From IMG/VR virus record IMGVR_UViG_3300017917_001996, positions 186,001 to 250,000 of that record: a DNA stretch of 64,000 bases, one strand, 5' to 3'. Both the position numbers and the translations under genes were made by a program. The notes under the pieces were generated by a model. It was not told where the DNA came from. It did no database searches and saw nothing but the letters and a program-made list of their open reading frames with translations. This document shows positions 1,435-55,587 of the stretch, one piece after another (within the stretch, counting starts at the first letter, position 1; every line of letters starts with the position of its first letter).

Positions 1435-4400
1435 GTGACTTAACAGTTACTTCTTTTGTATCAACAGGAACCACTGCACGTAGCATTGATTTTAGTACTG
1501 GCAATATAATAGTGGCCAACAATGCAGGTGGTACATTAATTAATATGACTGCCACTGGTTTAACCGCTACCGGAGAGAGCACCGGCAATGGATTTATCGT
1601 TCAAAACAATAGCGCGAATGCTACAACATTAACCTTTGGGGCATTTACAGAACCCAACGCAATGAACTTGTCTATTGACCGTGGTACATATGCATTAACC
1701 CTAGCATCCAGTGGCGCATATAGAAACTTAAATTTTACTGGATTTGCAGGTTCTCTAACTAACGTAGCAAGTTCTATATATGGAAACTTGATATTGTCTA
1801 CTGGAATGACTCTAGTAGCTGGTACCGCTGCTTGGACACTAGCTGCAACAACAGACAATTGGACTGTCACCACAAATGGCAAAACTCTTGATTTCCCTCT
1901 TACCTTCGGTACTGCTACTAGTGCATTGGCTACCTGGATCTTACAAGATGCACTTACACTAGGAACAACCAGACTTTTAACTCTTACCGGCGGTAATTTA
2001 AATATCAATGACAAAACTGTTACAACTGGGTTGTTTGCTAGCAACAATTCAAATACAAGAAATATTAATTTTGGCAATGGTAAAATAGTCCTTAACGCTA
2101 GCACAGCCGTAACAGTTTGGACTACAGCAACGACCACAGGTTTAACTGTTTCTGGAGTTCCTTTGGTCGAATCCAGAGGTGGTGGTACAGCTATAACAAA
2201 AACTATTACACCTGGATCATTAAACGAAGCTAACGCTATTAATTTTAGCTTGCTTGAAACAACTGGCTCGGTTACGTATGTTATCACAGCCGGTGCAGTC
2301 AAGAACTTAACAATAAATGGTGCACAGACCCTTAGTAATACCGCGTTGAGTATTTACGGTCACATTATTCATGGCACAGGTAATGGCACCACTACTTTTG
2401 CTACTGGTACCAACGCATGGACACTGGCTAATACAGGTACAACTACTGGTAATAATTACGGTGCATTTTTCCCATCGGGCGGGTATTTAACTGTACCAGC
2501 TAATTCAAATTATGTATTCGATGGTGATTTTACTATAGAAGGTTGGATGTACTTTACAAATGTGGGCTTCGTTGACCCGCAAAGTTTATTTTGTATAGGA
2601 AACGTTAGTGCTGGGTTTGATGTTCGTTGGTTTAATAGTCGTTGGCAAATTAGTTTTAATGCTGGCGCCGGTACTGACATGGGAGGCACTGCTACAAATA
2701 ATACATGGATTCACGTGGCTGCTGTTAGAAGTGGGTCATCGGTTAAGTTATACATAAATGGCGTAGCCACAGGCACTACTATTACTAATAGTTCAACGTT
2801 GGGATATAGTAATGTAGCTCTCGGTATTGGCGCAGGCGGGGTGACTGCAGGAAACCCATTGCAAAACGGATATATTTCTAACTTAAGAATAGTAAAAGGA
2901 ATTGCAGTTTATACTAATAATTTTACTCCTCCTAGCGGTCCGCTTACTGCTACACAGAGTGCCGGAACCAATATTGCAGCAATACCAGGAACGGAGACTG
3001 TTCTTTTAACTTGCCAGAGCAGCACGTTTGTTGATAATTCGTCTTACGGAGTCACTCCTACTCAGGTATCTAATGCAGCAGTTTCTGCTTTAAGTCCTTT
3101 TACACTTTACTCAACCAGCACCAAAGCTGTAGGTCTTCGAGCAACTGTGGATTTCCCAATTACCGTAAACGGCGTTGGCGGAGAATGGGAATTAGATAAT
3201 AACTTAACATTGGGTGCAACAAGGGTATTCACTTTAACCAATGGTACTTTTGACTTTAATAATAGAACAATAACTGCCAGCGGCATAACTGTCTTAACAG
3301 GATCAGCAACTGCTCGAAATCTAATAACTACTCTAGCAGTTACACATACCAGCGGTAGTTTGACTTTGGGTTCAAACATCAGTACCGGAGCTTATACATT
3401 AACTGCCGGTAATCTGTTCTTGGGCACAAATACACTAACAATGCTATCGTTTGCTAGCAACAATTCAAATATAAGAAATATAGATTTTGCCACAGGCAAG
3501 ATAGTCCTCAGTAACAGTGCAACAGCAACAATTTGGACTACAGCAACTGTTACAAATTTAACAACTTCAGGATCTCGATTAATCGAATCTACTGGCGGAG
3601 GAACCAGCGTTTTAAAAACAATTAATCCTGGATCATTAAGTGAAGCTAATGCTCTTAATTTTAGTTTATTGAACGTTGGCGGTACAGTAACATATTCATT
3701 TAATTCTGGTTCAGTGAATAATTTATTAATTAACGGACAACAAACATTTGATAACACAGCTACATTGACTATATACGGTAACTATACACATAGCATCTCT
3801 AACGGAACTACAACATTTACTGCTAGACCAAGTGCGTGGGTATTTGCGAGTACAACGGGAATCAAAACAATAACTACCGCGTCTGCAACACACGAATTTC
3901 CTTGGACATTCAATGGTGTTGGTGGCACATGGTTATTGCAATCCTCGGTTACGCTTGGTATCAATGGTACACTAACTTTGACTAACGGAAATGTAGACTT
4001 AAACGGATATACACTAACCAGCGGTTTGTTTGCAACAGCAGCCGGAACTAAGTCGTTAATATTCAATGGCGGAACACTGGCAATTACAGGCTCTGGTGCT
4101 ACCACATTTAATAATGCAAATACCTCGCAGCTAATCCTTGATAAAGGTAGTAGTGTTGGTACAATTAGTCTGACTAGCGCCATCGCCAAAACATTTATAG
4201 GCGGCAACTTTGATTATTCAGGTGTTATTTTAAATCAAGGTGGCACAGGAACACTAACTGTAGCCGGATCAAACACCTTCGAAGATTTGTCGGCTACTAT
4301 TAGCACTACTGCAAACTCTACAATAACTTTTAGTTCAGGAACAACTACTACATGGAAAAAGTTTACACTCAATGGTACAGCCACATACCAACCAACTGTG

Positions 4401-18487: not shown

Positions 18488-18495
18488 TATAAATA
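18488..18495 (+). promoter_or_regulatory. T4 late promoter TATAAATA
   Basis: Exact consensus; ATG at 18501. Confidence 0.7.
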
Positions 18496-18504
18496 ATTAT
18501 ATGA

Positions 18505-18933
18505 GTGAAGAGATTTTTATTAAAATCTACTAGAAATAAAATGTCAAAATCTCAACTCAAACGTTTTCAAAAAAATAACGGAACTTTCCTCGGAAGGGCA
18601 CACAGCGTTGAGACGCGAGCAAAAATGTCACAGAAAGCATCACGACCTAAATCAGACAAATGGAGAGAGAGTGCATCTAAGAATAGAAAAGGTAGACAGG
18701 CACATAATAAAGGTATTTTACATTCAGAAGAAACTAAGCAAAAAATAAGAGAATCAGTTAAAGGTGAAAAAAACGGATTTTATGGTAAACACCATTCCGC
18801 TGAACAACGTGAAAAAAAACGACAGGAAAAACTTACATCTCCTAGACATACTTGTCCTCATTGTAGTAAAATAGTTGATGCAATGAATTATGCTAGATGG
18901 CACGGCAATAATTGTAAAAAGAGGATTATATGA
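18505..18933 (+). CDS. NUMOD3-repeat protein without a nuclease domain (homing-endonuclease remnant)
   Basis: HSVETRAKMS, HSEETKQKIRES, KNGFYGKHHS; C-terminal CPHC...RWHGNNCK; A-rich DNA. Confidence 0.6.
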   Translation: MKRFLLKSTRNKMSKSQLKRFQKNNGTFLGRAHSVETRAKMSQKASRPKSDKWRESASKNRKGRQAHNKGILHSEETKQKIRESVKGEKNGFYGKHHSAEQREKKRQEKLTSPRHTCPHCSKIVDAMNYARWHGNNCKKRII

Positions 18934-28815: not shown

Positions 28816-29030
28816 AATCTTTCAAGCAATACTTGGCTGAAGCAGAAATGCTCAGCCAAGTAAATGAAAACAGTAATCTGCCTGTTGCCAATGATAGCAC
28901 TAGTCCTATAAATGGTAGCAAGGTAGATTACGAGTTTGCAAATAAACTCAGACGTAACCCTCCAAAACCTAAACCACATGAAAGAATACAGAGTCCGGGC
29001 AAACCACTTTTCCCAACCAGAAATTCCTGA
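28812..29030 (+). CDS. Small probable internal head protein (leader MKSFKQYLAE)
   Basis: Close match to the T4 capsid-targeting sequence MKTYQEFIAE. Confidence 0.65.
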   Translation: MKSFKQYLAEAEMLSQVNENSNLPVANDSTSPINGSKVDYEFANKLRRNPPKPKPHERIQSPGKPLFPTRNS

Positions 29031-29262
29031 TGCTGTTATGGACAATCAGGACCTTGCAAATCTGCAAAGGTTAGCTGGTATACAGACCATTGGTGTTGGC
29101 AAACTTGCCGAAGGCAGTAACATATCAGTAACTGGTAACGAGAAAGGCGAGTTAATGAAGAAACACAATATTAAACCAGGAACCCCAGAATGGTTCCAAC
29201 TTTGGTTTACACTGCCATATCTGACAAACACTTCTCCATTGGACCCAAAATTTAATAGATAA
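28978..29262 (+). CDS. Hypothetical protein with LQRLAG motif
   Basis: ATG 28978 in the ORF-track frame; shares the LxRLAG motif with 32791. Confidence 0.55.
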
Positions 29263-29293
29263 TTTTTTTACCTTACTGGTGATAAATAAACAT

Positions 29294-30060
29294 ATGAATA
29301 ATTACTATGTTTATGCTTATCTCAGAGAAGATGGAACTCCTTACTATATTGGTAAAGGCAATAAAAATCGAGCATGGACTAAAGGTAAAGGGGAAATAGG
29401 AAAACCTAAGGACCTTAACAGAATAATAATTGTCGAAAAGAATTTAACACTAACTGGTAGTTTAGCAATCGAAAGAAGATTAATCAGATGGTATGGTAGA
29501 AAAGATATAGGAACTGGAATACTTCGAAACCGAACCGACGGTGGTGATGGAGGAAAAGGCGCTAATGCCGGCAATAAATTATCAGAAAAAATAAAAAGAA
29601 AATATCATTGTCACACAAAGGCAAAAAGAGAACCCCTATGTCTGAAGAATCAAAAAAGAAACTTTCAGAATCATTAAAGGGCAAAAACCTTGGAAAACAA
29701 AGATCAATTGAAACAAAACTTAAAATGTCTCTAACTCTCAAAGGAAGAAAAAGAGAACCGATGTCGGAAGAGACAAAGAAAAAATTAAGTGAGGCAAATT
29801 TGGGTAAACATATAGAACCATTTACAGAAGAGCATAAACAAAAAATATCAAATGCTCTTAAAGGAAAGCCTAAAAAACGAGAATCTGTAGAAAAACAAAG
29901 ACAAAAAATAATCGGAAGAAAACCAAGTATAAGCGAAAGAGAAGCATATTTAAATGCTTTAGAAAAAGGAAAAACTGTGTGCGAACACTGTAAAAAGATT
30001 TTTACATTGGGTAACTATCGTAGATGGCACGGTGACAAATGTAAGTTAAATCAAATTTAA
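29294..30060 (+). pseudogene. GIY-YIG homing endonuclease with NUMOD3 repeats, broken by a 1-nt frameshift near 29590
   Basis: YYVYAY...PYYIGKG...IERRLI...LRNRTDGG in one frame; NUMOD3 repeats (PMSEExKKKLSE) and CEHC...RWHGDKCK in the -1 frame; late promoter GATAAATA at 29281. Confidence 0.75.
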
Positions 30061-30086
30061 TATGTACCAGGATAAGTACATATATT

Positions 30087-31001
30087 ATGAGCGCTGAAAA
30101 TTCTCTAATTAAAAGACCGTATTCATCAGAATCCTATTCTCTCGAACAGTTACAGGAATTTGCTCGATGTGCTGACCCAATCAACGGGCCCAGGCATTTC
30201 ATGAGTAATTACTTTTATATACAGCATCCTATCAAGGGCAGAATGAACTATGTGCCCTTTGAATATCAAGATAGACTAATTGAAACATATCATAATTATA
30301 GATTCAGTATTAGTCTAATGCCTCGACAAACAGGCAAGACAACCAGCGCCGCAGGATATTTATTGTGGTATGCAATGTTTAATCCTGATAGTACTATTCT
30401 TATTGCTGCACACAAATACACAGGCGCTCAGGAAATTATGCAGCGTATTCGTTATGCTTATGAATTGTGTCCTGACTTTATTCGTGCAGGTTGTACCAGT
30501 TATAACAAGGGCAGTATTGAATTTGAAAATGGGTCGCGTATTGTGTCGCAGACAACCACAGAAACAACAGGTCGTGGTATGTCTATTACACTCCTATACT
30601 GTGACGAGTTTGCATTCGTAAGACCTACCATTGCTACAGAATTCTGGACTTCAATTTCGCCTACACTAAGCACTGGTGGTAAGGCTATTATTACTAGTAC
30701 CCCTAACAGTGACGAAGATCAATTTGCCTTGATCTGGAAAGGCAGTCAAAAGTGTATCGACGAGTTTGGCAATAAAACTGAACTTGGTGTAAATGGGTTT
30801 AAAGGTTACCAAGCCAATTGGTGGGAGCATCCTGACCGTGACGAAAAGTGGAAAGCTGAAGAAATAGGTCGTATTGGCGAAGAACGTTTTCGACGTGAGC
30901 ACGGGTGTTTATGTGGTTCATCTCTTATTAAAATAAAACATCCTAATGGTCTAATAGAAGAAGTTACTATAAATGCTTTAAAGTCTCTATTAAGTTCGTA
31001 A
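30087..31001 (+). CDS. terL: Terminase large subunit, N-terminal ATPase half fused to a 31-aa intein N-fragment
   Basis: Walker A MPRQTGKTT, Walker B LLYCDEFAF, ITSTPN; ends RFRREHG|CLCGSSLIKI...SS*. Confidence 0.93.
   Translation: MSAENSLIKRPYSSESYSLEQLQEFARCADPINGPRHFMSNYFYIQHPIKGRMNYVPFEYQDRLIETYHNYRFSISLMPRQTGKTTSAAGYLLWYAMFNPDSTILIAAHKYTGAQEIMQRIRYAYELCPDFIRAGCTSYNKGSIEFENGSRIVSQTTTETTGRGMSITLLYCDEFAFVRPTIATEFWTSISPTLSTGGKAIITSTPNSDEDQFALIWKGSQKCIDEFGNKTELGVNGFKGYQANWWEHPDRDEKWKAEEIGRIGEERFRREHGCLCGSSLIKIKHPNGLIEEVTINALKSLLSS
30906..31001 (+). mobile_element. Split intein N-fragment (31 aa)
   Basis: Starts with Cys1 at the conserved REHG|C site; intein block A-like CLCGSSLIKI; ends in a stop codon. 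Confidence 0.85.
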
Positions 31002-31016
31002 TTTTTGATGAAACGG

Positions 31017-31024
31017 TATAAATA
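31017..31024 (+). promoter_or_regulatory. T4 late promoter TATAAATA
   Basis: Exact consensus, 5 nt before ATG 31030; would drive the HNH gene and the IntC-TerL(C) gene. Confidence 0.75.
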
Positions 31025-31029
31025 ATAAT

Positions 31030-31713
31030 ATGAGAAAGCATAAACATCATATTATTCCTAAGCATGCCGGTGGAACCAATGATCCATCAAATCTAATAGA
31101 ATTGACTATAGAGGAACATGCAGAAGCTCATCGTTTGTTATATGAAACTTACGGTAGGTGGCAAGATCGTGTAGCCTGGCTAAGTTTGTCTGGCATAATG
31201 ACAAACCAAGAAAGGATATATGAGATTTTAAAAAATTCAAATCCCGGCGGGTATAAGCATTCTGAAGAAATAAAAAAACAACTTTCTGAAATGCGTAAAG
31301 GTAATAAAAATCCAATGTTTGGAAAAGTTGCTGCTAATAGTGGAATTAAACGACCTGGTATCGGTGGCCGGAAAAAAGGGTCAGGATGGTCTGACGCAGA
31401 AAGATTAAAACAATTAGAAGTTCGATCTCAACCGGGTTATTATGATTTTACTAAAGATCCGGAGAGGAATAAAAAAATAAGTCAGGCAACTAAAGGTAGA
31501 AAAGGTTCGGCATTAGGAAAAAAATGGTTTCATAATAACGAAATTGAAACATATTCATTTAGTTGTCCTATAGGCTTTATACCTGGTAGGTTACCTGGCA
31601 GAAAATCAAACAAGGAAGGACTGCTCTGGTACAATAACGGAATTGTTAATAAGCAATTTAAAGAAGGACAACAAGTAGAAGGATTTACTCGTGGAAGAAT
31701 TAATAAAAAATAA
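31030..31713 (+). CDS. Free-standing HNH homing endonuclease with NUMOD3 and two C-terminal W-x-N-N..G..(R/P)GR repeats
   Basis: HKHHIIPKHAGGTNDPSNLIELTIEEHAEAH; HSEEIKKQLSE..KGNKNPMFGK. Confidence 0.85.
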   Translation: MRKHKHHIIPKHAGGTNDPSNLIELTIEEHAEAHRLLYETYGRWQDRVAWLSLSGIMTNQERIYEILKNSNPGGYKHSEEIKKQLSEMRKGNKNPMFGKVAANSGIKRPGIGGRKKGSGWSDAERLKQLEVRSQPGYYDFTKDPERNKKISQATKGRKGSALGKKWFHNNEIETYSFSCPIGFIPGRLPGRKSNKEGLLWYNNGIVNKQFKEGQQVEGFTRGRINKK

Positions 31714-32023
31714 CATCGGCCTGCAAATTTTAACAGACACAGGCTGGTCTGATTTTTCAGGACTTCTAGTAAGGGGCAGAAAGAAAACGGTACAAATACA
31801 AACGACAAATAAAAATGTTATATGTACTCTAGATCATAAATTTTTTAAACCTGATTTTACATTTGTTGAAGCACAACAATTAAGACCTCGACAAAAAATT
31901 CTAACAATTAATGGAACAGAACAAGTAGTATCAATTAAGATTCTTGACGAAAGAGAAGTATACGACTTATTTCATGTCTCGAAAAATTATAGATTTTATG
32001 CAAACGGTATACTTGCTAAAAAT
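31691..32023 (+). mobile_element. Split intein C-fragment (111 aa)
   Basis: TxxH at residues 46-49; terminal Asn111 followed by +1 Cys at 32024. Confidence 0.85.
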
Positions 32024-32758
32024 TGCGAATTCTTAATTTTCGACGAAACACTGATCAATGCTTCTACCTTATTAGAAATGCAGGGCACAGACCCAATCGA
32101 AAAACAAGGACAAGTACGCTGGTATCATAAACCCAAACGTGGAAGTACCTATGTGGTTGCCTTAGATCCAAGTCTTGGTACAGGTGGCGATGCTGCTGCT
32201 ATACAAGTTGTTGAACTGCCAGCATGTAAGCAAGTTGCCGAGTGGCAACACAATAAAACAGATATACGTGGGCAAATTCGAGTACTTAAAGAAATCTGTA
32301 ATTATCTTTACGAAGAAATTGGAACACAAAACGACATCTACTACAGTGTTGAGAACAACACCTTAGGAGAAGCTGCCCTAATTGCTATCAGTGAAGTTGG
32401 AGAAGAAAACATACGTGGATCTTTTGCCAGTGAACCGCGTAATGGTCAGTCTCGTAAATATAGAAGAGGTTTTACAACTACAAACAAATCAAAACTAGCA
32501 GCCTGTGCTAAGTTAAAGAGCTTGATAGAAAGCAAGAAGATGACTATATCTAGCTCTAATTTAATTTCGGAACTTAAGAACTTTGTATCTCACGGCAGCT
32601 CGTTTGAAGCTAAAATTGGCGAAACTGACGACCTAGTAATGGCAATGATCCTGGTTATCCGTGTGATACAGTATCTACAGAGCTTTGATCCCACTCTAGA
32701 CAGTTATGTTAAGGATCACGACGAGTTCATAGAACCCATGCCCTTTATTTTGATGTAA
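31691..32758 (+). CDS. terL: Intein C-fragment (111 aa) fused to the terminase large subunit C-terminal nuclease half
   Basis: GTG start with AAGGA SD; CTLDH (block B), VYDL and YANGILAKN|CEFL (blocks F/G); RNase H-like nuclease motifs VALDPS, VENN, TDDLVMA. Confidence 0.9.
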   Translation: MEELIKNNIGLQILTDTGWSDFSGLLVRGRKKTVQIQTTNKNVICTLDHKFFKPDFTFVEAQQLRPRQKILTINGTEQVVSIKILDEREVYDLFHVSKNYRFYANGILAKNCEFLIFDETLINASTLLEMQGTDPIEKQGQVRWYHKPKRGSTYVVALDPSLGTGGDAAAIQVVELPACKQVAEWQHNKTDIRGQIRVLKEICNYLYEEIGTQNDIYYSVENNTLGEAALIAISEVGEENIRGSFASEPRNGQSRKYRRGFTTTNKSKLAACAKLKSLIESKKMTISSSNLISELKNFVSHGSSFEAKIGETDDLVMAMILVIRVIQYLQSFDPTLDSYVKDHDEFIEPMPFILM

Positions 32759-32790
32759 CTAAATATAGTATTAGGACTCAAGGTCGGAAT

Positions 32791-34206
32791 ATGAAAAATA
32801 TTGAAAAAATAGCTGAGGAACTGTTTGACAAGATCCGTAGTAGATTTGAAAAGATCACCATTGGTAACGAAGAAGCCAATGAAACTGATGATCCTGCTCA
32901 GGCACGTTTCTTTAATTTTGATTATGTTGACAGGAATGGAAAAAACTACGGCAACATCATGATTAATATCGTTGATGAAGAAAGTTTAAAAATTTACTTC
33001 AGCAAAAACATCAGCGACGAGTTAAGCGAAGAAGAACAACAGGAATGGTACAACTTTCTTAAAGATCTAAGATATTTTGCCAAGCGTAATTTGCTAACAT
33101 TCGATACCAGAGATATTAGCAGAAACAATTTAACTATAAGAGATGTAAAACAAGTAGCCAAAGATACATCAGTTGTGGATTCATCTGCGGCACCTACCAA
33201 TACTGCTACTTCAGTTAACGAAAGCAAGTTATATGGTAGCACAAGAACCAGTATCCAAGAGTTTGGCCCTGTACGTTTAATCATTCGTCACAACGAAGCA
33301 GTTAACGAAGAAATTCCTGGGGCACGTAGCCGCAAGATCCGTGCCTTGTTCATTGAGACAGATCAGGGCGAACGTTTCCGTATGCCGTTTACTAAACTAA
33401 GTGCGGGTCGTGCCATGGCACAACACCTAGCACACGGTGGACAAGTTCATGACGAAGCTGGACATCACATTGTGGAGATGGTCGAAGAAATGAATAGTCT
33501 AGCATTCTTTGCTCGTAACACAAGACATAGGATGTTCGAAGAATCTGAAACACAAGCCATGGTTGAAGCCGCAGTTGAACGTTATCAAACACTACGTTCA
33601 AATCTAAAGCACATGGGCGGCACTCGTGGTTATCAAAACTTTGCTGAAAATTTTGTACCAAATACTCCAGTTGACGAAGAATTTGATTTAGATGCACTTA
33701 AAGAACGTTTTGTTAAAAAGATGTTTGATGAGAGATTAACACAGGCATTACCTTATGTACAACGAGCATATCAGCAAAGACAAGCTGAATCTAATGATCG
33801 ATATGTTAACGAATTTGATACATGGGCCGACGATTTGGTGCAAGAGCAAGACGATGCAGAAACGCAAAATATAATGAAACTTGCCGATGTTATGCAGTCG
33901 CCTATTGCGGTAGGCATTGATGGTATTGATGCAATTAATGCCATCAAAGATTACGTATCCGATGACCAACTCTTTTCGGATATTACAGAACTAAGTCGTA
34001 ATGCTGGAATTGAAGCAGATGCTCGTCCACTAATTAACCAATGGGCAATGGACCAAGGCCATTCGGCATTGTACACCTCGGAACCAACTATTCCGACACA
34101 AGAACCTCCTGTACAAGATGACGATCAGCCGATAGCACCAAAACCGGAAGCAGATATTACAGAATCCGGTTTGCGGATGTTAAAAAGGCTAGCAGGACTA
34201 GCATAA
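32791..34206 (+). CDS. Hypothetical late protein (471 aa), possibly head-associated
   Basis: Late promoter CTAAATA at 32759; VNES and ITES motifs; C-terminal LKRLAGLA. Confidence 0.7.
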   Translation: MKNIEKIAEELFDKIRSRFEKITIGNEEANETDDPAQARFFNFDYVDRNGKNYGNIMINIVDEESLKIYFSKNISDELSEEEQQEWYNFLKDLRYFAKRNLLTFDTRDISRNNLTIRDVKQVAKDTSVVDSSAAPTNTATSVNESKLYGSTRTSIQEFGPVRLIIRHNEAVNEEIPGARSRKIRALFIETDQGERFRMPFTKLSAGRAMAQHLAHGGQVHDEAGHHIVEMVEEMNSLAFFARNTRHRMFEESETQAMVEAAVERYQTLRSNLKHMGGTRGYQNFAENFVPNTPVDEEFDLDALKERFVKKMFDERLTQALPYVQRAYQQRQAESNDRYVNEFDTWADDLVQEQDDAETQNIMKLADVMQSPIAVGIDGIDAINAIKDYVSDDQLFSDITELSRNAGIEADARPLINQWAMDQGHSALYTSEPTIPTQEPPVQDDDQPIAPKPEADITESGLRMLKRLAGLA

Positions 34207-35995: not shown

Positions 35996-37060
35996 ATGGC
36001 CAAACCTTTTGACCTAAGTAAATTTAGAAAAAACATCACAAAAAGTATTGAAGGCTTGAGTATCGGATTTAACGATCCAACAGACTGGGTTAGTACTGGT
36101 AACTATGCACTTAACTATTTGATCTCTGGAGACTTCCATCGCGGAGTACCCTTGGGCAAAGTTACTGTGTTTGCTGGCGAATCTGGCGCAGGCAAATCTT
36201 ATATCTGTTCAGGTAATTTAATTCGACACGCACAAGAACAAGGCATCTATCCAATTCTAATCGATTCGGAAAATGCTCTAGACGAAGCTTGGTTACACGC
36301 ACTAGGCGTTGACACCAGTGAAGAAAAACTATTAAAAGTTAATATGGCTATGATTGATGACGTAGCCAAAATGATTTCGGAGTTTGTCAAAGAATACAAA
36401 ACATTACCCGATGACCAGCGTCCTAAGGTCTTGTTCATTCTCGACAGCCTTGGTATGTTGTTGACACCTACTGATGTTAATCAGTTTGAAGCAGGTGAAA
36501 TGAAAGGTGACTTGGGTCGTAAGCCTAAAGCACTGACAGCACTTGTTCGTAACTGTGTTAACATGTTTGGTAGCTTGAACATTGGTCTGGTTGCCACTAA
36601 CCATACCTATGCTAGCCAGGACATGTTTGACCCGGATGACAAGATCAGCGGTGGTCAAGGCTTTATCTATGCCAGCTCGATTGTTGTTGCTATGAAGAAA
36701 CTCAAACTTAAAGAGGACGATGATGGCAATAAGATTAGTGAGGTACGCGGTATCCGTGCTGCTTGTAAGATCATGAAAACTCGTTACGCAAAACCTTTTG
36801 AAAGCGTACAGGTTAAGATTCCCTACGAGACAGGTATGAATCCGTATTCTGGTCTCACCGATCTGGTTGAAGCCAAAGGTATGCTTAAGAAGGAAGGCAA
36901 TAGTCTTGTGTATACTACAACAGACGGCGAAATCATTAAGAAGTTCCGCAAGGGCTGGGAACGTAATGATGATGGTTGCTTGGATGTGATTATGAAAGAT
37001 ATTACTGCAAATCCTCAAGCCATAAGTAGTCAAGCAACAGTTGAAGAAACTGTTGAATAA
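35996..37060 (+). CDS. uvsX: RecA-like recombinase (UvsX)
   Basis: GESGAGKS, LIDSENA, FILDSLG, VATNHTY, SGGQGFIYASS, KTRYAKPF. Confidence 0.92.
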   Translation: MAKPFDLSKFRKNITKSIEGLSIGFNDPTDWVSTGNYALNYLISGDFHRGVPLGKVTVFAGESGAGKSYICSGNLIRHAQEQGIYPILIDSENALDEAWLHALGVDTSEEKLLKVNMAMIDDVAKMISEFVKEYKTLPDDQRPKVLFILDSLGMLLTPTDVNQFEAGEMKGDLGRKPKALTALVRNCVNMFGSLNIGLVATNHTYASQDMFDPDDKISGGQGFIYASSIVVAMKKLKLKEDDDGNKISEVRGIRAACKIMKTRYAKPFESVQVKIPYETGMNPYSGLTDLVEAKGMLKKEGNSLVYTTTDGEIIKKFRKGWERNDDGCLDVIMKDITANPQAISSQATVEETVE

Positions 37061-52964: not shown

Positions 52965-54092
52965 ATGCAAAAACAGTCTTTTCGTTACCTAGAAGATTAT
53001 ATTGAATACCTTGCTGGATTCCCTATGACTAATAATGTTAGGCCGGGTACAGTGAGCTTGGCTAGATACGACACGCAGATTGTTGCTAGTATTGCAAACC
53101 AAACGTTCAATGGTACCGGCTTCAGTGATCGACAAGCCCTACTAGCTCATAAGTTGGTAGTAAAGTATAAAAGGCAATTTGCCAACAATGGAATTCTAAT
53201 TGGCGAACATGAAGAAGACCCAAAGTTTCGATTACCACTTAGACAAGTTGATCGTTCTAAAATTATTACCCTTAATGATAAAAAAATTGTTGTACGTTTT
53301 CCCTACGACGTTAAAATGATTGATGCTCTACGAGAGTATGGTAAAAAGATTCCCAGCGAGTTGAGATTTAACAAACCCAATCGACAGTGGGAAGCTGACA
53401 TTACTGAACCAAGAGTTCTTTGGGCCTGCGAGTTTGCTGATAAATATGAGTTTGAGATTGATACGGTATTGCTAGAGCTTAGAGAAAAGATCGATCATTG
53501 CCAACAAATAAGGTATGCCATTGAGCTGGATTATGTTGACAATCAGATAGTTATTTCTAATGCTGAGTCTAGTCTATTAGATTATATTAACAGCAACGTT
53601 GGTGGACTTGGCAAAGACAATCTACTAAACTTAATTGACCAAAGTAGCATTTTAGGCTACACGGTTAGTGAAAAGATCATTACACTCTATGACTTCGGCC
53701 AAGTTGACAAAAGGTTAGCACTAAAGAAAGAAAGTCATTTTCCTTGGAATGACGAAGGCAGCTTTGAAAAAATCGTAGACTATGCTGAATGGTCGCAAAG
53801 ATATCCTATATTTGTTTTTGATCCATTGAACGAAAATAAACCTAATAACCCAGTCCTTGAAAAATTAAAAAATCATTTTAAAGACGAGTTAGAAGTAGTC
53901 GGCGCTCGACAAAAACGTATCGATTACCAAAATAAGAAGTGTGTATACTTAACCCACTGGCATTCTAGCTGGCAAATGAAGATTCCTTTGCTGGTTACAC
54001 TAACAGGGCTAATGGTTGGGTTAAAGAAACAACACATACTTCAGCACTCAGAAAAGATTGTATTTTCTTCTGAGATTCTCTATAATCCATAA
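52965..54092 (+). CDS. Hypothetical protein with a possible HARP-like segment, upstream of UvsW
   Basis: VVRFPYDVKMIDALRE...RFNKPNRQWE. Confidence 0.6.
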   Translation: MQKQSFRYLEDYIEYLAGFPMTNNVRPGTVSLARYDTQIVASIANQTFNGTGFSDRQALLAHKLVVKYKRQFANNGILIGEHEEDPKFRLPLRQVDRSKIITLNDKKIVVRFPYDVKMIDALREYGKKIPSELRFNKPNRQWEADITEPRVLWACEFADKYEFEIDTVLLELREKIDHCQQIRYAIELDYVDNQIVISNAESSLLDYINSNVGGLGKDNLLNLIDQSSILGYTVSEKIITLYDFGQVDKRLALKKESHFPWNDEGSFEKIVDYAEWSQRYPIFVFDPLNENKPNNPVLEKLKNHFKDELEVVGARQKRIDYQNKKCVYLTHWHSSWQMKIPLLVTLTGLMVGLKKQHILQHSEKIVFSSEILYNP

Positions 54093-54093
54093 T

Positions 54094-55587
54094 ATGCCTG
54101 AATGTATACTAGAAATACTTGACGAAGTAAACGTAAAAATTAAAGGGTTGGATTTAGACAGCCGTCGCCAACTAGTCAATCGATATAAATTTGAAATTCC
54201 TGGAGCAAGGTATTTGCCTGCTGTACGTCTAGGTCGTTGGGATGGCAAAGTAAGTTATTTTCAACTCAGTGGCAGTACTTATATTAACCTGTTGCCGGAA
54301 ATTTTACCTTGGTTAGAAGAACGGGGCTACAATGTTGAACTAGAAGATCAACGTGATTATCGCACACAGTTCAGCTTTGAGCAAGTACACGAAAAAAGTT
54401 TTGAGCACATACTGTGGCCCAAAGGACATCCTGCTGAAGGAAAGCCTATCATGCTACGTGACTACCAAGTTGAGGTAGTTAATAAGTTCTTGTCCAATCC
54501 ACAGTGTATACAGGAAATCGCCACTGGTGCTGGTAAGACAATTATGACTGCTGCCTTGAGCAATGCAGTTAGTCCTTATGGCCGTAGCATTGTTATTGTA
54601 CCTAACAAAGACCTAGTTCGCCAAACAGAAAAAGACTACATTAACATGCAACTGGATGTTGGTGTTTACTTTGGCGACCGCAAAGAATACAATAGGCGGC
54701 ACACTATCTGCACTTGGCAAAGTCTTAATGTTATGCTTAAGAATACCAAGAACCACGAAGCAGAAGTTACTATACACGAATTCTTAGAGGATGTAGTGTG
54801 CGTGATCGTTGACGAAGTGCACATGGCCAAGGCTGATGTACTTAAACAACTGCTAACAGGTCCTATGTCTCGAGTGCCGCTACGTTGGGGTCTAACTGGT
54901 ACAATACCCAAAGAGAAATATGAATTTATGAGCTTGTTCTGTAGTATTGGACAAGTCATTGGACGTCTCAGAGCCAGCGAACTGCAAGAGCAAGGTGTGC
55001 TGGCGCAGTGCCATGTTAACATTGTTCAGTTAGTTGAGTATGCAGAATACAGCAACTATCAAAGCGAATTGAAGTACTTGCTGGAAAACGATAAAAGAAT
55101 CGCTTACATCAGTAAGATGATCAGCAGAATCAAGGATTCGGGTAACACATTGATTCTAGTGGACAGGATTGGTGCAGGCAAGGCATTACAAGCTCATCTC
55201 AGCTCGTTGTTTAGTGTATTAAAAGATGCACCCGACGTAGTGTTTATTTCGGGCAGTACCAAGTCTGCTGATCGTCAAGATGAATACGAACAAGTTAGCA
55301 CAGCAAATAACAAGGTTATGATTGCTACCTACGGTGTAGCTGCTGTGGGCATTAACATTCCACGAATTTTCAATCTAGTGCTAATTGAGCCTGGCAAGAG
55401 CTTTGTGCGTGTTATCCAAAGTATCGGGCGTGGCATTCGTAAAGCCGAAGACAAAGACTTTGTACAGATCTGGGACATTACCAGCACCTGCAAGTTTGCC
55501 AAGAGACACCTAACACAGAGAAAGAACTTTTACAAAGAAGCCAACTATCCATTTACCATAGACAAAGTTGACTATCAAAAACAATAA
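54094..55587 (+). CDS. uvsW: SF2 DNA helicase, UvsW-like
   Basis: LRDYQ, ATGAGKT, IVDEVH, GLTGT, GINIP, QSIGRGIR; promoter TTGTAT-N17-TATAAT at 54058-54086. Confidence 0.9.
   Translation: MPECILEILDEVNVKIKGLDLDSRRQLVNRYKFEIPGARYLPAVRLGRWDGKVSYFQLSGSTYINLLPEILPWLEERGYNVELEDQRDYRTQFSFEQVHEKSFEHILWPKGHPAEGKPIMLRDYQVEVVNKFLSNPQCIQEIATGAGKTIMTAALSNAVSPYGRSIVIVPNKDLVRQTEKDYINMQLDVGVYFGDRKEYNRRHTICTWQSLNVMLKNTKNHEAEVTIHEFLEDVVCVIVDEVHMAKADVLKQLLTGPMSRVPLRWGLTGTIPKEKYEFMSLFCSIGQVIGRLRASELQEQGVLAQCHVNIVQLVEYAEYSNYQSELKYLLENDKRIAYISKMISRIKDSGNTLILVDRIGAGKALQAHLSSLFSVLKDAPDVVFISGSTKSADRQDEYEQVSTANNKVMIATYGVAAVGINIPRIFNLVLIEPGKSFVRVIQSIGRGIRKAEDKDFVQIWDITSTCKFAKRHLTQRKNFYKEANYPFTIDKVDYQKQ

Follow-up and report, generated by a model that had tools for sequence, protein, structure and literature searches.

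How does a phage obtain a single large terminase subunit (TerL) when the sequence for it is broken in two and a third gene lies between the pieces? The question is raised by positions 30,087 to 32,758 of a 64,000-nucleotide (nt) stretch of DNA, referred to here as the window, which covers positions 186,001 to 250,000 of IMG/VR virus record IMGVR_UViG_3300017917_001996. In this locus the ATPase half of TerL ends in a short N-terminal intein part (IntN), a gene for an HNH endonuclease follows, and a separate open reading frame (ORF) then begins with a long C-terminal intein part (IntC) that leads into the nuclease half. The TerL of this jumbo phage is very probably a "fractured gene" with an atypically split, trans-splicing intein, as judged from the anatomy of the locus, its homologies and its conservation among relatives. 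The features are as follows (aa, amino acids; a slash in sequences below marks a splice junction).

30087..30905, plus strand: N-extein, the TerL ATPase half, 273 aa, C-terminal ...RFRREHG; Pfam Terminase_6N, 4e-16; matches positions 433-628 of the PHROG 36964 TerL profile
30906..31001, plus strand: IntN, 31 aa (30906-30998; CLCGSS...LLSS) and TAA stop; block A only
31017..31024, plus strand: TATAAATA, putative T4-type late-promoter-like element, 5 nt before the HNH ATG
31024..31056, plus strand: 10-bp inverted repeat; 5' arm over the HNH start codon, 3' arm in the coding sequence of the HNH motif
31030..31713, plus strand: free-standing HNH-NUMOD3 homing endonuclease gene, 227 aa; Pfam HNH and NUMOD3; PHROG 655 "homing endonuclease", 2e-19
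31677..31683, plus strand: AGAAGGA ribosome-binding site of the IntC gene, within the HNH 3' end, 7 nt before the GTG (direct sequence reading)
31691..32023, plus strand: IntC, GTG start through terminal Asn, 111 aa; carries blocks B (TLDH), F (VYDL) and G (YANGILAKN)
32024..32758, plus strand: C-extein, the TerL nuclease half, 244 aa and stop, N-terminal CEFLIFDE; Pfam Terminase_6C

Anatomy of the Broken Gene

The ORF listing and direct reading of the sequence give an ATPase-IntN ORF of 304 aa (30087..31001) and an IntC-nuclease ORF of 355 aa (31691, GTG, to 32758), the exteins of which sum to 517 aa (273 + 244). The anatomy proposed in an earlier note made from the letters of this DNA, namely two TerL halves, a 31-aa IntN, an HNH gene, a 111-aa IntC and a 517-aa joined TerL, is thereby exact to the residue. 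The ATPase-IntN, HNH and IntC-nuclease ORFs each occupy a different frame, so that joining of the two halves by read-through is impossible. The locus is compact: 28 nt of non-coding sequence separate the IntN stop from the HNH ORF, and the 3' end of the HNH gene overlaps the start of the IntC gene by 23 nt.

The Empty Site

The exteins were predicted to join as REHG-CEFL, and relatives that lack the insert join at that very point. When IMG/VR was scanned with the alignment of the family, 80 loci were returned, about 60 of which are intein-free, with the match to the N-extein running directly into the match to the C-extein in the same frame. The N-extein of these intein-free relatives is 72-84% identical up to residue 271-273. 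Nine uninterrupted TerL genes carry the exact REHG/CEFL junction (...RIGEERFRREHG/CEFLIYDETLIN...), the remaining intein-free junctions read REME/CEFI, REHE/CEFL and similar, and Agrobacterium phage Atu_ph07 reads QEHE/CEFV at this hinge. Similarly, in tblastn, phage TerLs that lack the intein match the IntC-nuclease ORF from residue 111/112 onward, and on a single PHROG TerL profile the N half meets the C half at positions 626-628. Excision of the insert thus restores the host protein exactly, residue 273 of the N-extein being followed in frame by residue 1 of the C-extein. The C-extein itself is the nuclease of RB49/T4 gp17, both by sequence (1.6e-15) and by predicted fold (target template modelling (TM) score 0.81). 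A layout of this kind lies far beyond chance.

Identity of the Intein and Its Split Point

As a single sequence searched against the PDB, residues 2-111 of the IntC-nuclease ORF match the gp41-1 intein (1.7e-6) and VidaL (6e-6). A profile of 18 related IntC segments matches gp41-1 (5e-14), CatC (2.3e-13), VidaL (4e-12) and Spl DnaX (1e-11); in the CatC match, residues 11-114 align with 5-113 of IntC, the +1 Cys-Glu included. The IntN sequence alone finds no match in the PDB. A profile of 19 related N-half tails gives one significant match there, to CatN (6dsl_A, "Consensus engineered intein CatN"; 2.8e-7), from end to end. The AlphaFold (AF2) model of the IntC-nuclease ORF has two domains and a mean predicted local distance difference test score of 82.8. 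For the intein domain of this model, which contains IntC and no IntN, Foldseek returned VidaL, Cat and gp41-1 at target TM scores of 0.64-0.73, consistent with the HINT fold, and DnaB and DnaE inteins were found as well; all of these matches have a probability of 1.00, with target TM scores of 0.6-0.73 overall. That the insert is an intein, as had been claimed, is therefore supported both by sequence (gp41-1, CatC, VidaL) and by predicted fold, and the domain can be assigned to the class-1 HINT inteins. Its identity to characterised inteins is about 23% with CatC and 25-28% with VidaL and gp41-1.

Where is this intein broken? Block B (TLDH) lies within IntC, which places the break between blocks A and B, and since the family profiles cover both Cat chains, CatN and CatC, from end to end, Cat is split at the same place. 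The sizes of the parts, 31 aa for IntN and 111 aa (more than 100) for IntC, are those of an atypical split. The short-IntN, long-IntC architecture of AceL-TerL and GOS-TerL, which the earlier note had recognised here, thus fits in its dimensions and finds further support in the end-to-end matches to both Cat chains. Kinship with the AceL/GOS-TerL clade is suggested mainly by IntN, the split point and the host site. The Cat chains carry EFE ahead of residue 1 and Cys-Glu after the last residue, which may be compared with EHG/ and /CEF in the window; judged from these ends, the insertion site of AceL and GOS may be that of the window.

Catalytic Residues and Selection

All of the residues expected to carry out splicing are present in the window: Cys1 of IntN, the block B TxxH, the block F Asp, the terminal Asn and the Cys at +1. 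To what extent are they kept in relatives? A search with residues 1-130 of the IntC-nuclease ORF against a collection of 5.8 billion proteins yielded at least 125 clusters at 90% identity, made up of IntC-nuclease proteins of 355-365 aa with a common start point, on contigs of up to 352 kb. T46 and H49 (block B), D92 (block F), N111 (terminal) and C112 (+1) are found in 120 of 120 family representatives, and Cys1 in all 19 related IntN sequences, in relatives whose overall identity is 46-77%. Eighteen more related loci show the same split, some with an endonuclease gene between the two parts and some without. Pairwise ratios of nonsynonymous to synonymous substitution (dN/dS) are 0.09-0.23 for the intein halves and 0.07-0.14 for the HNH gene, which amounts to purifying selection on both. 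The start codon of IntC is conserved in position, being GTG in the window and ATG in two relatives (L018 and L030), and the stretch bearing its ribosome-binding site is invariant across relatives. The invariance of the splicing residues, together with purifying selection, favours an active splicing element over a dead gene or a purely non-covalent pair. On the same grounds, DNA packaging by this phage would depend on protein trans-splicing, as the earlier note had supposed.

A sequence of events can be proposed on this basis. A class-1 mini-intein occupies RREH(G/E)/CEF, the conserved hinge that joins the ATPase domain to the nuclease domain, and its coding sequence is interrupted after block A by the free-standing HNH-NUMOD3 gene. 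Two proteins would then be made, ATPase-IntN with the 31-aa IntN and IntC-nuclease with the 111-aa IntC, the latter from the GTG start and the ribosome-binding site within the HNH 3' end. The short IntN is predicted to dock into the near-complete IntC, as in the AceL, GOS and Cat TerL inteins, after which Cys1, the block B Thr and His, the block F Asp, the terminal Asn and Cys+1 would perform trans-splicing to give the 517-aa TerL (...REHG-CEFL...). The HNH enzyme would be the selfish driver of the arrangement. It most likely cleaves intein-free TerL alleles of co-infecting relatives, and repair of the cut allele would copy in the entire IntN-HNH-IntC cassette.

Weighing the Alternatives

Several observations weigh against this interpretation. 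The penultimate residue of IntC is Lys and not the usual His, and in the family it is Lys in 68 of 120 representatives, Ser in the other 52 and never His. A penultimate His is common in inteins and is no defining feature of them. At IntC position 100 (31988-31990), this allele alone has Tyr; 89 of the 120 representatives have His at this position, and the relatives without His have Arg, Asn, Ser or Lys. Since Tyr100 is peculiar to this allele, this copy could splice slowly. IntC is also about equally similar to gp41-1, VidaL and CatC, and its equal nearness to the first two indicates a divergent relative of the AceL/GOS/Cat family and not a close member of it. Lastly, no second TerL copy is present within the window, but the window covers only 64 kb of a contig of 250 kb, and an intact second TerL may lie elsewhere on it. 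The departures at the penultimate position and at position 100 would be accommodated by a pair that does not splice at all, in which IntN and IntC serve only to keep the ATPase chain bound non-covalently to the nuclease chain, or in which the two chains act separately. Genes split by an HNH endonuclease can indeed give active two-chain enzymes, as in Aeh1 nrdA (cited in PMC2677866). Such a pair would, however, have no need of residues that serve splicing only, and these (Cys1, block B Thr and His, block F Asp, terminal Asn) do not vary among 120 diverged relatives, in an intein that is under purifying selection. Furthermore, the homologous Cat, AceL and GOS TerL inteins do splice (PMC11766414). 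A non-splicing pair is, therefore, unlikely.

It might also be argued that the gene is simply dead, either through a recent insertion of the endonuclease gene or through an assembly or sequencing artefact in a defective or mis-assembled genome. The contig is of the metagenome type, and the adjacent GIY-YIG/NUMOD3 gene (29279-30060) does have a frameshift. Yet the same three-gene layout, with stop and start positions alike, is found again in numerous independent contigs as well as in cultured phages, dN/dS is well under 1 in all parts, and the start codon and ribosome-binding site of IntC are conserved, which makes a dead gene highly improbable. A further possibility is that a self-splicing intron carries the HNH gene as its ORF, in which case RNA splicing would rebuild a contiguous mini-intein that then splices in cis. 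Phage group I introns commonly hold HNH and GIY-YIG genes, and an allele with a contiguous mini-intein does exist (L009). Against this, a permissive Rfam scan of 29000-33500 returned no group I or group II intron model up to E = 10, only noise, and the locus offers an intron just 28 nt of non-coding sequence, with the HNH ORF overlapping the IntC gene. The tail of IntN and the head of IntC, moreover, align with the protein ends of CatN and CatC, and the 35-nt and 1-nt spacers of endonuclease-less relatives (L008 and L035) are too short for any intron. Reconstruction at the RNA level is thus scarcely conceivable, and a group I intron with an endonuclease ORF in particular was ruled out by the lack of an Rfam match, the 28 nt of non-coding sequence and the 1-35-nt spacers of those relatives. 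Trans-splicing of a split intein is left as the explanation that best fits the locus.

Stages at the Insertion Site and Movement of the Cassette

The related loci present the same TerL site in several states. A contiguous mini-intein, with IntN and IntC linked by eight residues, occupies it in P0024/L009. HNH-NUMOD3 inserts are found in the window and in L005, L006, L012-L018, L020-22 and L030, and L024, L025 and L029 have a DUF7487 endonuclease-like gene instead of HNH. In L010 a truncated HNH gene is fused in frame to IntN. Split genes with no endonuclease are represented by L008, with a spacer of 35 nt, and L035, with a spacer of 1 nt; the L008 spacer aligns with the last ~45 nt of the HNH gene, the part that bears the ribosome-binding site and start of IntC. 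The split is thus stable without an endonuclease gene.

Cultured phages add two further forms. In Vibrio phage Va1 the IntN is 32 aa long (CVSGST...LLNS), and IntC is preceded by a DUF559/Vsr-like domain that is fused to it. In its locus (L004, 1370-3655) the DUF559/Vsr-like nuclease and IntC are annotated in frame as one coding sequence of 761 aa, which may be a stage of an intein acquiring an endonuclease domain or may be an over-extended gene call. Yersinia phage MHG19 (Tevenvirinae) reads ...FKQEH/C..., with a 37-aa IntN, a SegE-like GIY-YIG gene and then an IntC ending ...THN/CAEFHGTSGTLIS.

Is the cassette mobile? Between L006 and L015 (locus coordinates 3215-4333), IntN-HNH-IntC is 88-97% identical and both exteins are only ~70% identical, and the steps in identity sit at the splice junctions. 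Synonymous divergence between the same two loci is 0.29 in the intein halves and saturated in the exteins. The position of the steps and the synonymous contrast show that the cassette moved as one unit, which indicates a recent lateral transfer of IntN-HNH-IntC in this pair, to judge from the alignments. In a tree of 83 C-exteins, the presence of the intein changes at least nine times (gains or losses), at least six of these changes being forced by strongly supported branches, and the window allele falls into a supported clade of seven alleles, four of which are intein-free. This is the pattern that would be expected of homing driven by an endonuclease.

The HNH Gene and Its Control Elements

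The Pfam HNH and NUMOD3 domains and the match to PHROG 655 confirm that the gene between the halves, which the earlier note had called HNH, is a free-standing homing endonuclease. Orthologues are found at the corresponding position in L005, L006, L013, L015 and others.

A late promoter had been proposed for this gene, and the proposal holds in part. The core of the motif is enriched ahead of start codons: ATAAATA-N5-ATG is found four times in the window where 0.31 would be expected (0 of 100 shuffles), at 18489 (a NUMOD3/zinc-finger ORF), 29282 (a GIY-YIG gene), 31018 (the HNH gene) and 26560 (a 164-aa ORF), so that three of the four sites lie ahead of endonuclease-like genes. The core ahead of the HNH gene is, moreover, kept at the corresponding place in eight related loci. 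The full TATAAATA, in contrast, occurs once at the locus, and the 8-mer is not enriched in the window (three found, 4.8 expected). ATAAATA is depleted overall in the window, with 13 sites found and 19.7 expected. Ten of these 13 sites nevertheless lie on the coding strand ahead of a gene start, at a distance of 12-88 nt, which suggests that a T4-like late-promoter element is used by the phage; examples of sites are 15355 (minus strand), 19929, 23419, 24117, 26560, 27068 and 34813. It is thus plausible that TATAAATA/ATAAATA acts as a putative T4-type late-promoter-like element. Scans of the sequence for sigma-70 and terminator consensus gave nothing above shuffles. The 10-bp inverted repeat over the HNH start codon might perhaps serve translational control of the HNH gene, although this is a weak proposal, as the fold over the start codon is no better than that of shuffled sequence (z = -0.37).

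A second ORF with a very similar leader lies elsewhere in the window. At 18488-18933, a 142-aa ORF has NUMOD3-like repeats and a C-terminal zinc-finger tail identical in kind to that of the ORF at 29608-30060, and it is preceded by TATAAATAATTATATGAG, which nearly matches the stretch ahead of the HNH gene. The ORF showed no nuclease domain and looks like a decayed endonuclease cassette.

Neighbouring Genes and Other Split TerL Genes

The upstream neighbour of TerL, at 29279-30060, is a second homing-endonuclease gene in two overlapping frames. A GIY-YIG-like N-terminal part (29279-29677) is followed by three NUMOD3 repeats and a zinc-finger tail (29608-30060), with a frame shift in an A-rich run at ~29590-29610 and ATAAATA-N5-ATG ahead of the gene. 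The change of frame may reflect a pseudogene, a sequencing error or slippage. The gene that follows TerL, at 32791-34206, encodes a protein whose PHROG match is a virion structural protein, and further 3' the context is T4-like, with a RecA/UvsX-like recombinase and a UvsW-like helicase (35996-37060 and 54058-55587).

Split TerL genes of other kinds were met during the searches. In Agrobacterium phage Atu_ph07 (L001, 1665-3856), TerL is annotated as two coding sequences, the first of which ends in ...GRQLGK and a tail of ~45 aa, and the second of which begins with a HINT-like part of ~145 aa ending ...GILSHN/TTVAAAY. The sequence suggests a further split intein whose N part is short, here at the P-loop. 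In Salicola phage SCTP-2 (L002/L003), the TerL pieces lie ~40 kb apart on opposite strands. There, gp267 has an IntC at its start, for the P-loop site, and an IntN-like tail at its end, for the Walker B site; gp224 opens with an IntC, again at the Walker B site, and has a contiguous intein inside, so that the TerL of this phage seems to require several splicing events. The "DNA packaging protein" of Campylobacter phage PC14 (L091, 2495-3823), like that of 40 other Campylobacter phage records, starts with an IntC-like domain. In PC14 this domain ends ...VSHN/CAFIDKW, in the Walker B region and not at the hinge, and because the gene follows a neck-protein gene, its N half must lie elsewhere. The IntC query also matched 61 Salmonella phage records.

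Significance

Taken as a family, these loci may form a large clade of TerL inteins, atypically split and biochemically uncharacterised, with Lys or Ser and no His at the penultimate position, in which every stage of gene breaking is found at one orthologous site and the cassette is still moving between TerL alleles. The stages would comprise the contiguous mini-intein, its breakage by endonuclease genes of three or more unrelated families, decay of the endonuclease and an endonuclease-free split intein. Our own opinion on this broader reading is evenly divided. The presence of every stage at one site supports, on comparative grounds, the endonuclease-invasion model for the origin of split inteins. 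If the reading is true, the clade is a natural test bed for that origin and a source of new short-IntN splicing pairs, which may be orthogonal to Cat and VidaL. The intein of the window could enlarge the small set of characterised atypical split inteins, namely AceL-TerL, GOS-TerL, Cat, VidaL and PolB16. The locus would also provide a natural and well-supported case of an enzyme, essential for virion assembly, that has to be stitched together post-translationally.

The practical value is modest: a 31-aa IntN is short enough for peptide synthesis, and the chemistry of a Lys/Ser penultimate residue is unusual. Loci of this kind are annotated today as two "terminase large subunit" genes and a hypothetical protein, for example in Yersinia phage MHG19, Vibrio phage Va1 and Atu_ph07. 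The value added here is the picture of the family, that is, its size, its Lys/Ser penultimate residue, the full life cycle of the endonuclease at one site and the evidence for transfer of the cassette.

Comparison with Known Systems

The split inteins AceL-TerL, GOS-TerL and Cat, the last of which is a consensus of atypical TerL inteins, are reportedly the subject of work by Thiel (2014), by Bachmann and Mootz (2015) and by Stevens (2018). Their IntN/IntC sizes are 25/104 aa for AceL-TerL, 37/115 aa for GOS-TerL and 30/104 aa for Cat (PMC11766414). They have in common with the window a TerL host, a split after block A, a short IntN, a long IntC with blocks B, F and G, the Cys1 residue, and Cys at +1 followed by Glu. 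They differ at the penultimate position, which is Lys in the window and Lys or Ser in its family, whereas the solved CatC chain has His before the mutated terminal position. VidaL and gp41-1 (PDB 6vgv and 6qaz), which are phage mini-inteins, are among the best matches to IntC in both sequence and fold. VidaL is naturally split at an atypical site; gp41-1 has a canonical split with a long IntN, and the hosts of both are other than TerL. Given an identity of about 23-28% to characterised inteins, the window's intein can be regarded as a new and divergent member, as the earlier note had it, yet it is one allele among at least 125 clusters.

A comparable arrangement without an intein is found in Aeh1 nrdA-mobE. 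As in the window, an HNH endonuclease gene lies between the halves of an essential phage gene, and a late-promoter TATAAATA and a hairpin are reported at the start of the endonuclease gene (as cited in PMC2677866). Unlike in the window, no intein is involved and the halves function as a non-covalent complex.

The closest precedent for the locus as a whole is provided by the fractured genes of Dassa et al. (2009), who described a gp17-like terminase from Lake Gatun "fractured at an unusual point", with a C part of 122 aa that carries all N motifs but N1 (PMC2677866). In the same survey, TATAAATA and a hairpin were noted upstream of gene-fracturing endonucleases, the 3' end of the endonuclease gene overlapping the downstream gene (PMC2677866). 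The window is alike in having an endonuclease gene, here an HNH-NUMOD3 ORF, between the halves, TATAAATA 5 nt upstream of it and a 3' overlap of 23 nt; the hairpin is not significant. It differs in the type of endonuclease, which is GIY-YIG or Vsr-like in that survey (PMC2677866) and HNH-NUMOD3 in the window, while the relatives of the window have DUF7487, DUF559/Vsr-like or SegE-like GIY-YIG enzymes at the same site in place of HNH. The architecture of the window is also present in two cultured phages, Vibrio phage Va1 and Yersinia phage MHG19. Because the arrangement, including the unusual split of the terminase, TATAAATA and the 3' overlap, is already described in Dassa et al. 2009 (PMC2677866), the locus is of a known kind. 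It is not a new kind of system but one known since 2009 and common in phage metagenomes.

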